This document shows positions 2,874-56,676 of a stretch of DNA of 64,000 bases, piece after piece. A program made the translations under genes and the position numbers. The notes beneath the pieces are model-generated. The model worked only from the letters and a program-made list of their open reading frames with translations, ran no database searches and had not been told where the DNA came from. The DNA is from Hyaloraphidium curvatum SAG 235-1 (lineage: Eukaryota > Fungi > Monoblepharomycota): the NCBI GenBank assembly GCA_025558095.1, contig JAIVFI010000018.1, positions 434,001 through 498,000 of the forward strand, in the 5' to 3' direction. The number at the start of each line of letters is the position of its first letter. The first letter of the stretch is position 1.

Positions 2874-4821
<1,948 letters not shown>

Positions 4822-53812: not shown

Positions 53813-55132
53813 ATGGCCATCGTCGACGGCTACCTGGCCTTTGCCAACGCGGCCGGCGCCGTGCTGAAGCCCGTGGCGGACCGCCTCGAGGACGTCGCGC
53901 TCGGGATCGCGAACCGCTATGCCCCCGACGCGACCGCCGCCGCGTCGGCGTGGCTGGAGCGCAACCAGAGCTCGCTGAGCAAGCGGCTGCCGCTCATGCA
54001 CCCCGTGAGCACGCGATGCCGCGCCGGGAAGGACCCGGGGCCCGGGGATCGCGGCGCTGACGCCACCGTCCCGCGCAGTTCCACGCGATCCTCCTCGCGC
54101 TCGCGTACCTCCTCGTCCTGCCCCTGATGAAGCAGCTCCCGGACCTCAGGAAAGCCGGCTTCATCAAGCCCCTGATGGTCCTCCACAACCTCCACCTATT
54201 TGCCCTCAGCTTCTACATGTGCACCGGGATTTGGGCCGAGGCGAGCCGCAGGCGGTACTCGTGGTTCGGCAACCCCGCGGACGAGACGGAGGAGGGCTGG
54301 CCGATGGCCAGGATGATTTGGCTGTGGGTATCGGGGAAGGCGGCGGCTGGGCGAGGGTTGGCTTTGGGATCACGGCCGGTCTCGCCACCTCTTTGGGAGG
54401 CGAGAACTGGGCACGGAATGCCCGTCGTCGGCCGAAGGCAGGATGAACGTGGCGAATAGCTTTGCTCGCTTGCTTGGGAGTGGAGGAGGAGACGAAGGCG
54501 GGCCTGCTGGTCGCTGGATCAACTCTGACAACCCTTGCCCTCCCAGCTTCTACTTCTCCAAGCTGCCCGAGTTCGTCGATACCTTCATCATGATGCTCAA
54601 GCGCAACTACCACCAGGTCTCCTTCCTCCACGTCTACCACCACTCCTCCATCTTCCTGATCTGGTGGCTCGTCACCTTCCTGGCCCCCACCGGCGAGGCG
54701 TGGTACTCGGCCATGCTCAACTCCTTCATCCACGTCATCATGTACGGCTACTACTTCAGCGCCGCGATCGGGTGGCGCGGCGTGGACTTTGTCAAGCGCT
54801 ACATCACGATGATGCAGATGACGCAGTTCGTGACGATGATGGTTCAGGTAGGGCGTTCTTCCGTTCCCCGCGAGGGCTCTTCTGATGCGTTGCTACCGCA
54901 GGCCACGTACGACATCATCCACGGGCTCAAGACGACCTCGAAAACCCCCCTCAAGACCGTCCTCCTGGAGCCGGCCCTCCACGCGCACCAGACAAACACC
55001 TACCCGCTCCTCCTCTCCACCGTGCTCTGGATCTACATGGTGACCATGCTGGGCCTCTTTGCCAACTTCTTCGTCAGGAGCTACTCCTCGAAGGAGTCGA
55101 AGAAGGCGGGCAAGGTCAAGAAGGCGGAGTGA
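53813..55132 (+). CDS. Fatty-acid elongase (ELO/GNS1-SUR4), PUFA/delta-6-elongase-like
   Basis: FYFSK.PEFVDT.IM.LK, SFLHVYHHSSIF.IWWLVTF.AP.GEA, NSFIHVIMYGYY, TMMQMTQF, LGLFANFF, C-terminal KKAE; resembles the Mortierella GLELO type from recall. Confidence 0.93.
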
Positions 55133-55207
55133 AGCTAGACTTTAGAGGATCAAGGCCTTGTACTGGCCCGGAATTATTGGACGTGAAAGATTCTCTTGCC
55201 CGGAAGG

Positions 55208-56571
55208 TCAGGTGTACACGACTCCTCCGAAAAAGCCGATCGCACGAGCCGGCTTCTCCGCGGTGCCCTCACGATCGCTCCAGCCCAGGATCAGCACCGG
55301 GCACGGGTTGCAGCGCATCTCGCCGCAGATGGCCGAGGCCAGCCCGCGTTCCTTCAGCCTCTCCACGGCATCCCACATCCCCGCATATTCCTTCTTCTTG
55401 TCCTCGAACTCCTGCGCTCCCTCGTCGTACGACTCGCGGCACAATATCCGCGTCTCGAACCACTCCTTCACCGCGTCGTCGGAGCCCAGGCGGTCCTTGT
55501 GGACCGGGTTCGCGGCCTCGGGGTTGATTCCCATCGCCGCAAACACGTCCTTCGGCTCCAAGGAGGGCGTCTCGACGACGACGGGGAGGAAGGGGTACTC
55601 GCCTTCGGAGCCCATGCTGACGGTGCAGGTGGTGGTCTTGGTTGAGACGTCGGCAAGGTACTCGAGGTCCTGGATCGAGCGATCAGGCAGGTGATGCAAG
55701 CGACACGCTCGCCCTACCTTCTGAAGGCCCTCGAGATCGGCAGGGGAAACACCGTCAGGCAGGGCTACGTCTTCGCCCGCTTTTCGCTTGGCTTGCAGCT
55801 CCCGAAGCCACCCGAATTGCGCCGGATTGTAGGCCACGCCGAAGCTAGTGAGGACCTGTCAGAAGACGCCGTGGTCGGAGAGGGGAGGCTCCAACCTCCA
55901 CGCCTTTGGTTCCGGCTTGAAGATGTACTTCTCGCCTTCATCCCAGTAGGCAGAGGCCTGCCCGTCCGCAAACGCCGAAATGAGCGCCTTGCGCCCGTCA
56001 CCGAGGTCCGAGAAATCAAACTTGTCGAGGAGTGCCGAAAGAGCGTCCGAGCCACCTGCAGCTTCCTCGTTCGTGTGCTTTGTATCGCCCGCATCCCCTC
56101 CCTCGGGTTCAGCGTCCGATTCGGCCTTGGCTTTCTTCGCCCGAGTTGCCCTGGCCTTCTTGGGCGCCGGTTCCGCGGCCGCGGCGGCTGCCTTGCCTCT
56201 CGTCCTCTTCGCCGGCTTTTCTTCCTCCGCCGCAGGCTCCTCGACGTCGACGGGCGCTTTTTGCTCGGCCACTGGCTCTCCGGAAGCCCCCTCCTCGGTG
56301 TCTCCCGCGGCCACGCCCGCCTCGACGTAGCCCTCCTTTAGCTTCTCTTTCACCATCTTCTCGACGAACTTGGCCGCTTCCTCGCTCGACGCGTGCGATT
56401 TATCCCTCGTCTGGCCGTTGGTTCCCAGCTTCCCGAAGCGGACCGTCGTGTCGGAGGACCCCTCTTCGAGGCTGATTTCCCAGAACTAGGGACGGCATCA
56501 GCTCCATTGGGGCACCGGGAGGCACGGGAAAGGACCTTGGTTGTGTGCTCGAAGTAGCGCTTGACCGACAT
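55208..56571 (-). CDS. WGR domain plus acidic/basic linker plus NuiA (nuclease A inhibitor)-like domain
   Basis: KRYFEH..KFWEI......TVRFGKLGTNGQ......EEA.KFVEKMVKEKLKEGY (WGR); SMGSEGEYPF...VLILGW...IGFFGGVVYT* (NuiA-like); introns 56535-56486, 55903-55856 (GC-AG) and 55717-55670. Confidence 0.75.
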
Positions 56572-56676
56572 TCTGGCTGTGGAGACGGCGATGTGGACGG
56601 AGGTCGCCCCAGTCTCCTTGTGGACCCTTGCCTTGTCGTCCTTGCTTTTTCGGACCCTCGGATCACCACCGGCTAT

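Follow-up and report, generated by a model that had tools for sequence, protein, structure and literature searches.

A WGR domain fused to a divergent NuiA-like module in the fungus Hyaloraphidium curvatum: a candidate DNA-tethered inhibitor of EndoG/Nuc1-class nucleases

The stretch analysed here, referred to as the window, comprises 64,000 nucleotides (nt) of contig JAIVFI010000018.1 from Hyaloraphidium curvatum SAG 235-1, a fungus of the phylum Monoblepharomycota, and carries on its minus strand a gene whose product joins an N-terminal WGR domain to a C-terminal module resembling NuiA, the cyanobacterial inhibitor of the nuclease NucA. Translation of the region placed the ATG at 56571 and the TGA at 55208–55210, and the span 55208–56571, given earlier in a first-pass annotation made from the sequence alone, is the exact coding sequence (CDS). 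The open frames of the gene are interrupted in the genomic translation, its four exons (56571–56536, 56485–55896, 55844–55718 and 55669–55208) summing to 1,215 nt. The exon ranges were joined solely to check their identity with ‘hypothetical protein DFJ74DRAFT_131533 [Hyaloraphidium curvatum]’ (404 aa, hereafter P0001), a protein returned by an exhaustive search, and the joined ranges translate to it exactly; the searches themselves used exon references or P0001. The features of the gene are listed here, the RNA contig named among the evidence being described below.

55208..56571, minus strand: full coding sequence, in four exons, of P0001 (DFJ74DRAFT_131533), the WGR-NuiA-like protein of 404 aa
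56536..56571, minus strand: exon 1, residues 1–12 (MSVKRYFEHTTK); RNA contig and exon translation
56486..56535, minus strand: intron 1, 50 nt, GT..AG; RNA contig joint 56485/56536 and splice dinucleotides
55896..56485, minus strand: exon 2, encoding the greater part of the WGR domain, the acidic/basic linker and the first residues of the C-terminal module; RNA contig
55845..55895, minus strand: intron 2, 51 nt, holding an in-frame TGA; RNA contig joint 55844/55896
55718..55844, minus strand: exon 3; RNA contig, and the orthologous exon at 4775–4909 of contig L003
55670..55717, minus strand: intron 3, 48 nt, stop-free and in frame, GTAGGG..ATCCAG; RNA contig, and absent from P0001
55208..55669, minus strand: exon 4, residues 252–404 and the stop; RNA contig
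56318..56544, minus strand: WGR domain, residues 10–68, spanning intron 1; Pfam PF05406
56120..56218, minus strand: Lys/Arg-rich stretch, residues 102–134 (KPAKRTRGK...KKARATRAKKAKAE); read from the sequence and kept in the orthologue
55793..56041, minus strand: N-terminal sub-domain of the C-terminal module, residues 161–226 (..AYWDEGEKYIFKPEP..), spanning intron 2; matching W[FY]CYW..[YF]VFKP in the paralogue family
55211..55744, minus strand: predicted NuiA-like core, approximately residues 243–404, spanning intron 3; hhalign against the NuiA profile, and ESM Atlas neighbours carrying NuiA_2/NuiA
55592..55609, minus strand: SEGEYP motif, residues 272–277, in which E273 (55604–55606) is the equivalent of NuiA Glu24
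55208..55213, minus strand: codon of the C-terminal Thr404, the counterpart of NuiA Thr135, and directly after it the TGA stop

The transcript evidence consists of assembled contigs of one public run that match this DNA, the type of the run having been guessed as RNA. On the window, a 2,312-nt contig showed six canonical joints, three of them GT..AG on the plus strand, in a neighbouring elongase gene, and three CT..AC, belonging to the WGR gene on the minus strand; because all six introns are missing from it, the contig represents a spliced transcript, although the run was only guessed to be RNA. At the WGR gene it spans 54899–56603, from beyond the stop codon to 32 nt upstream of the ATG, with three introns skipped, and the gene is expressed as one spliced gene. 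The first-pass annotation had been right that the gene contains introns but had counted two of them rather than three, the third (55670–55717, 48 nt) having been read through as VGRACRLHHLPDRSIQ; the NuiA-resembling strings that it quoted are unaffected by this correction. The same contig confirmed the three introns of the elongase gene, at 54005–54078, 54324–54546 and 54845–54898. The elongase and WGR genes are convergent, and as their stops (55132 and 55208) lie 75 nt apart, a contig that joins the two indicates overlapping 3′ ends, not one transcript.

The N-terminus is a WGR domain, as had been proposed, with Pfam PF05406 matching residues 10–68 of P0001 at 54.3 bits (E 1.4e-14; cut-off 22) and exon 2 alone at 50–51 bits (E 1.2e-13). 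The Trp of the upstream KFW is present and the signature triplet reads F-G-K (VRFGKLG), a conservative change; P0013, a metagenomic relative described below, has YGRIG. An acidic stretch follows the domain, and then the Lys/Arg-rich stretch of residues 102–134, which is well conserved (KPKRGRAK...KKARATKSKK in the orthologue on contig L003) and appears to resemble a nuclear-localisation signal. P0001 has neither a signal peptide nor a presequence, the WGR domain starting at the N-terminus. In the PARPs, the WGR domain is a DNA-dependent activation and break-binding module (PMC8120803), while bacterial WGR domains are predicted nucleic-acid-binding modules fused to various partners (PMC4275035); the WGR domain of P0001 would likewise be expected to bind DNA. 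Its membership of the family that includes PARP1–3 and the bacterial WGR proteins is clear, but P0001 lacks the PARP regulatory and catalytic domains, departs from the family in its FGK triplet and carries as partner a NuiA-like domain, a combination absent from the literature searched. Two more WGR matches were found in the genome, at G000:C14:169258-169437:- (E 4.9e-12) and G000:C10:769312-769518:- (E 1.5e-8), in open reading frames (ORFs) of 382 and 375 aa, respectively.

Relatives of the C-terminal module were few. The exhaustive search of 1.84 billion representatives returned P0001 itself, three orthologue fragments (P0002, P0003 and P0004) and three spurious repeat proteins, P0005–P0007, which were discarded, their match being restricted to a short AYKEWFDTNYPQY-type repeat; a word-based protein search with a 211-aa read-through piece found nothing. 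A search of the organism’s own genome revealed a paralogue of 242 aa at G000:C34:72393-73121 (L002:1189-1917:+), a single open frame without a WGR domain, which shares the string FGSESDYPWLP and has the C-terminus ...GGFMSVVIHT. The family profile found two copies only in the genome, namely this paralogue and the window gene, where profile A3 matches 55211–56041 over model positions 3–208. Profile searches of metagenomes and public-run assemblies recovered P0008–P0014, and P0015 and P0016 were taken from the cluster of P0013. On these comparisons the module is a small, unannotated eukaryotic family of about a dozen sequences in two subfamilies. The A-type subfamily consists of the window protein, P0002 and P0003; the B-type subfamily is marked by a W[FY]CYW...[YF]VFKP sub-domain, the motifs GSESDY..P and NPVP, and the ending GGF.S..IHT directly before the stop. 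The two align with each other as far as the C-terminus (hhalign probability 97.6%, E 4.7e-12). The sub-domain of approximately 80 aa that precedes the NuiA-like core reads W[FY]CYW..G.P.....[YF]VFKP in the B-type proteins and AYWDEGEKYIFKPEP in P0001, and showed no family match and no counterpart in NuiA. A metagenome locus scan added one member with in-frame stops, which was set aside: L091:2-367:+ (JGI metagenome Ga0115001_10157830), a B-type sequence in AT-rich DNA, has six such stops, an intact SESDY motif and the end ...GGFISGLIHT, and probably comes from an organism with reassigned stop codons, ciliate-like in this respect.

The resemblance of this module to NuiA had been proposed from quoted NuiA strings, and these proved to be accurate: the real NuiA has LLFMSESEYPF and ends in DVYVIGETPAGNLAGISTKVVET before the stop, while P0001 has VSMGSEGEYPF and ends in VLILGW...AIGFFGGVVYT. 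We took as reference the NuiA of Nostoc sp. PCC 7120 (plasmid alpha, L005:33843-34247:+, adjoining nucA), built a NuiA profile of 79 distinct homologues from cyanobacteria and Bacteroidota, and compared it with a eukaryotic profile of 11 sequences. The two were aligned by hhalign with a probability of 95.7% (E 8.8e-9, score 57.9) over 116 collinear columns that begin at NuiA position 21 and reach the final residue of each profile (NuiA positions 21–136). Control scores were lower, at 12 for the reversed NuiA alignment and at most 21.6 and 41.9 after column and block shuffling, respectively, the last of these being high (86.7%) because the short motif survives block shuffling and scores well alone. 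When both alignments were reduced to the tails that follow the SE-x-E-Y-P motif, they still aligned end to end (75.5%, E 2.4e-5, score 32.5), compared with a maximum of 22.1 among 20 block shuffles of the tail. The B-type subfamily matched the NuiA profile with a probability of 96.1% (E 2.9e-9), and Pfam NuiA was the recurrent best sub-threshold match of its members (four of nine, E 0.0078–0.2) out of 24,736 families, the best relatives reaching 14.8–16.9 bits against a gathering score of 22.1. With a NuiA hidden Markov model (HMM) built here, family members ranked at the top against 648 background ORFs of the window, P0001 scoring 7.6 bits, and an ESM Atlas feature search placed both subfamilies beside NuiA/NuiA_2 clusters (score 0.91; 203–206 of 256 features). 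Taken as profile comparisons, these results make it highly probable that the C-terminal 160 or so residues are a divergent homologue of NuiA, and the relationship suggested by the first-pass annotation is thereby supported. The module would accordingly be expected to adopt the alpha/beta fold of NuiA.

The residues on which the action of NuiA depends are shared. In the NucA–NuiA complex of Ghosh et al. 2007 (JBC), Glu24 is reportedly inserted in the active site. At its C-terminus, NuiA has a Thr that serves as a direct ligand of the catalytic Mg2+ in NucA (PMC5587815, PMC2790893). Among the 79 NuiA sequences Glu24 is conserved in 100% and Thr135 in 97%, and in 79 of 81 NuiA homologues a Thr lies directly before the stop. 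In the eukaryotic family the Ser-Glu of the motif (E273 in P0001) occurs in all members whose sequence extends over the site and a C-terminal Thr (T404) in all 11, as well as in the stop-riddled L091; both residues, which the first-pass annotation had singled out, are thus invariant. The NuiA glycines G108, G118 and G127 also align with invariant glycines of the family.

The fusion with the WGR domain recurs in other organisms. Contig L003, from another organism (GC 53.5%), holds an orthologue that agrees in its four exons and in where the introns lie, and whose WGR domain is approximately 84% identical, as counted from the translations. On a metagenome contig of approximately 40% GC (L004), P0013/P0016 combines a WGR domain (E 4e-14) with a B-type module in one uninterrupted ORF, and the same architecture is therefore found in both subfamilies. 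This recurrence indicates that the WGR fusion is real and under selection. The distribution of the NuiA-like family is patchy, with few members among the 1.84 billion representatives. In a further protein, P0008, the N-terminus resembles the tail of a WGR domain.

NuiA itself occurs in fusions. At three of 12 Bacteroidota loci (L077:1501-2556:-, L079:1501-2439:- and L084:1012-1869:+), one longer open frame encodes an N-terminal HIT (histidine-triad) domain (Pfam HIT, E 1e-13 to 6e-18) and a C-terminal NuiA (E 1e-30 to 1e-42), and the free NuiA C-terminus is kept, as in the WGR fusion; we know of no description of this architecture. The bacterial NuiA domain in L084 also touches the NuiA_2 model of Pfam, from which a relationship between NuiA and NuiA_2 follows. 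A contig labelled as an uncultured Acetobacteraceae metagenome-assembled genome (L015, CAZZZY010000001.1) carries a NuiA gene that shares 67% identity with that of Nostoc; the label may have arisen by misbinning in a metagenome that contains cyanobacteria and possibly derives from a lichen.

A possible target is encoded elsewhere in the genome. No cognate nuclease lies in the window, as had been noted from the start, and the 31.9-Mb assembly has a single Endonuclease_NS gene, in three exon pieces at C14:550703-551458. Its DRGH motif, its TNIAPQ Asn motif and its N-terminal hydrophobic segment identify it as an EndoG/Nuc1 orthologue. We propose that the WGR-NuiA-like protein would be cytosolic or nuclear, and probably nuclear, and that its NuiA-like domain would block a Mg2+-dependent beta-beta-alpha-metal nuclease, one of the Endonuclease_NS family, by plugging its active site, the free C-terminal Thr404 ligating the catalytic metal and Glu273 occupying the position of the scissile phosphate. 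The obvious endogenous target would be the single EndoG/Nuc1 homologue, and the WGR domain would concentrate the inhibitor on DNA or DNA breaks. Nuclease binding, its inhibition and the identity of the nuclease are here argued from homology, and the full mechanism, a DNA-tethered NuiA-type inhibitor of EndoG/Nuc1-class nucleases, is in our judgement finely balanced between holding and failing. A wider proposal, that the family as a whole comprises new eukaryotic NuiA-type metal-bridging inhibitors of EndoG/Nuc1 in fungi and diverse protists, with WGR recruited by two subfamilies, possibly independently, is put forward tentatively and may well prove wrong.

A number of observations weigh against this reading, several of them at the level of homology itself. 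P0001 and the C-terminal exons, compared with Pfam and NCBIfam up to E 10, matched nothing except WGR; the Pfam NuiA model missed the protein and its exons at E ≤ 10, and NuiA_2 (PF23151, gathering score 27 bits) found no match in the protein, its relatives or the genome. A whole-genome scan with both models was likewise empty, and sequence searches of the PDB with the single protein and two profiles returned nothing relevant. AlphaFold2 (AF2) models of exon 4 were poor, with a predicted local distance difference test (pLDDT) score of 38 without an alignment and 55 with the 11-sequence eukaryote-only alignment, from which bacterial NuiA had been kept out for the sake of independence at the price of model quality; with such models nothing but noise came from Foldseek against the PDB, VIA-align wide (48,161 chains) and the Atlas shape search. 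The A-type subfamily alone (effective number of sequences 1.3) reached NuiA at 45% and over the motif region only, and the link of the window protein to NuiA is therefore transitive, via the B-type subfamily. If the resemblance were convergent or due to chance, the module being an unrelated new domain, the missing HMM, PDB and model matches, the sequence identity of 15–19% in the hhalign alignments and the good score of the short motif in the block-shuffled control would all be as expected. Chance would not account for a collinear, end-to-end alignment that outlasts removal of the motif (32.5 against 22.1), for the coincidence of the Gly positions and the terminal Thr in the two families, for language-model neighbours that were independently NuiA/NuiA_2 clusters for both subfamilies, or for NuiA being the match that recurs below threshold out of all Pfam families, and we consider this explanation improbable.

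Further observations count against the proposed reading. NuiA Glu134, conserved in 98% of the homologues, is replaced by Tyr or His in the eukaryotic family, which also has an invariant NP[VC]P motif and an extra N-terminal sub-domain, both absent from NuiA; the A-type proteins have a 7-residue insert before the last strand; the nuclease gene on C14 is unlinked to either NuiA-like gene; and we found no biochemical data on any eukaryotic NuiA-like protein in the literature. A true NuiA homologue might have been re-purposed to bind another metal-dependent enzyme or a ligand, or to act as a DNA or phosphate mimic that regulates a WGR-associated process (PARP-like or end-processing), with no inhibition of an Endonuclease_NS nuclease. 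The replacement of Glu134, the added sub-domain and family-specific motif and the lack of a genomic link to a nuclease would suit such a role, as would the Bacteroidota fusions of NuiA with a HIT nucleotide hydrolase, which hint at roles beyond that of a simple antidote. However, both subfamilies keep the two NuiA-mechanism residues and a chain that ends exactly at Thr without variation, which is difficult to account for unless a metal-bridging contact of the NuiA kind is made, and the genome does encode a nuclease that would be a suitable target; re-purposing is a serious contender, although we think it unlikely. An immunity-type protein directed against secreted nucleases of foreign origin (beta-beta-alpha-metal toxins of bacteria or other microbes, or NucA-like enzymes) rather than the organism’s own EndoG/Nuc1 would recall the bacterial NuiA-type proteins, which protect against a secreted nuclease (PMC2790893), and the bacterial WGR domains that have protein-interaction modules as fusion partners, the YwqG/TYPP family among them (PMC4275035), and the rare and patchy family would fit an origin in a conflict system. 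But the protein has no signal peptide, starts with its WGR domain and carries an NLS-like (nuclear-localisation-signal-like) basic stretch, and a domain that tethers it to DNA would be better suited to guarding the cell’s own chromatin; no toxin or nuclease gene adjoins it, protection against bacterial toxins has no specific support, and this role seems to us quite improbable.

On a Logan contig of run SRR23967301, L095:1520-2493:+, an A-type orthologue from a third organism has the apparent start MTDASGPS..., and no WGR match was found in the 1.5 kb preceding it, which are occupied by a different gene. Together with the paralogue on C34, which also lacks the domain, this case indicates that the NuiA-like module stands alone and that WGR is accessory and dispensable for the core function, which likewise counts against the proposed reading. 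It could further be held that the WGR and NuiA-like parts are two genes wrongly merged, as a gene caller for prokaryotes separates them in the orthologous contig L003 and the L095 module comes without WGR. That explanation is effectively refuted: a single RNA contig covers every exon and is spliced in frame at GT..AG sites, no stop other than that inside intron 2 separates the two parts, the orthologue has the same exon layout, and P0013 carries both domains in one uninterrupted ORF, all of which upholds the earlier description of one gene.

The proposed inhibitor was also compared with known systems other than the WGR proteins. To our knowledge, only two protein inhibitors acting on EndoG/Nuc1-type nucleases have been described, NuiA of cyanobacteria and EndoGI of Drosophila, and these are unrelated to each other. 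NuiA (PF07924; PDB 1J57 and 2O3B) is the intracellular inhibitor of NucA in Nostoc/Anabaena sp. PCC 7120, and the likeness consists of profile–profile homology over NuiA residues 21–135, the S-E-x-[DE]-Y-P motif containing the counterpart of Glu24, the three Gly positions, and a chain end at an invariant Thr that is Mg2+-ligating in NuiA (PMC5587815). The window gene differs in failing the Pfam model, in being eukaryotic and intron-containing, in the replaced Glu134, the NP[VC]P motif and the insert before the last strand, and in adding the sub-domain of approximately 80 aa, the WGR domain and the basic linker to what in NuiA is a free-standing protein of 135 aa. In Nostoc, moreover, nuiA and nucA lie 8 nt apart, whereas the Endonuclease_NS gene of H. 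curvatum is on contig C14, although adjacency of inhibitor and nuclease genes is not expected in a eukaryote.

The Pfam family NuiA_2 (PF23151, ‘NuiA-like’) consists, by the labels of ESM Atlas clusters, mostly of fungal proteins of approximately 190 aa, and its clusters, themselves of eukaryotic NuiA-like proteins, are the nearest feature neighbours of the window protein (score 0.91; 203 of 256 features). That Atlas neighbourhood is the sole link, as the PF23151 HMM found no match in P0001, its relatives or the genome, and the NuiA_2 proteins stand alone, with no WGR among the common Pfam families of the Atlas clusters; we found no characterised member. Eukaryotic NuiA-like proteins were thus already hinted at by NuiA_2, and the present family lies outside both Pfam models. 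Drosophila EndoGI (PDB 3ISM), a nuclear inhibitor of EndoG, resembles the window protein in its proposed role, that of a non-mitochondrial backup inhibitor engaging the catalytic metal site of an Endonuclease_NS-family nuclease (PMC2790893). It is unrelated in fold and origin, being a tandem helical-repeat protein that uses acidic loops and a metal-bound water, and has no WGR domain.

If the proposed mechanism holds, the NuiA mode of action, in which a C-terminal Thr bridges to the Mg2+, would operate in eukaryotes, a function would be assigned to a WGR domain outside the PARPs, and the unannotated family could join the NuiA clan. E273, T404 and the WGR domain are simple targets for mutation and make the idea directly testable. 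The WGR-NuiA-like protein would also be an explicit candidate for how fungi and protists keep leaked apoptotic nuclease off their nuclear DNA. On the wider and more tentative proposal, an inhibitor brought to DNA breaks would shield chromatin ends from leaked mitochondrial nuclease, a second solution, by another mechanism, to the problem that EndoGI solves in Drosophila, and the bacterial HIT-NuiA fusions would point to a general action of NuiA domains at the ends of damaged nucleic acids.

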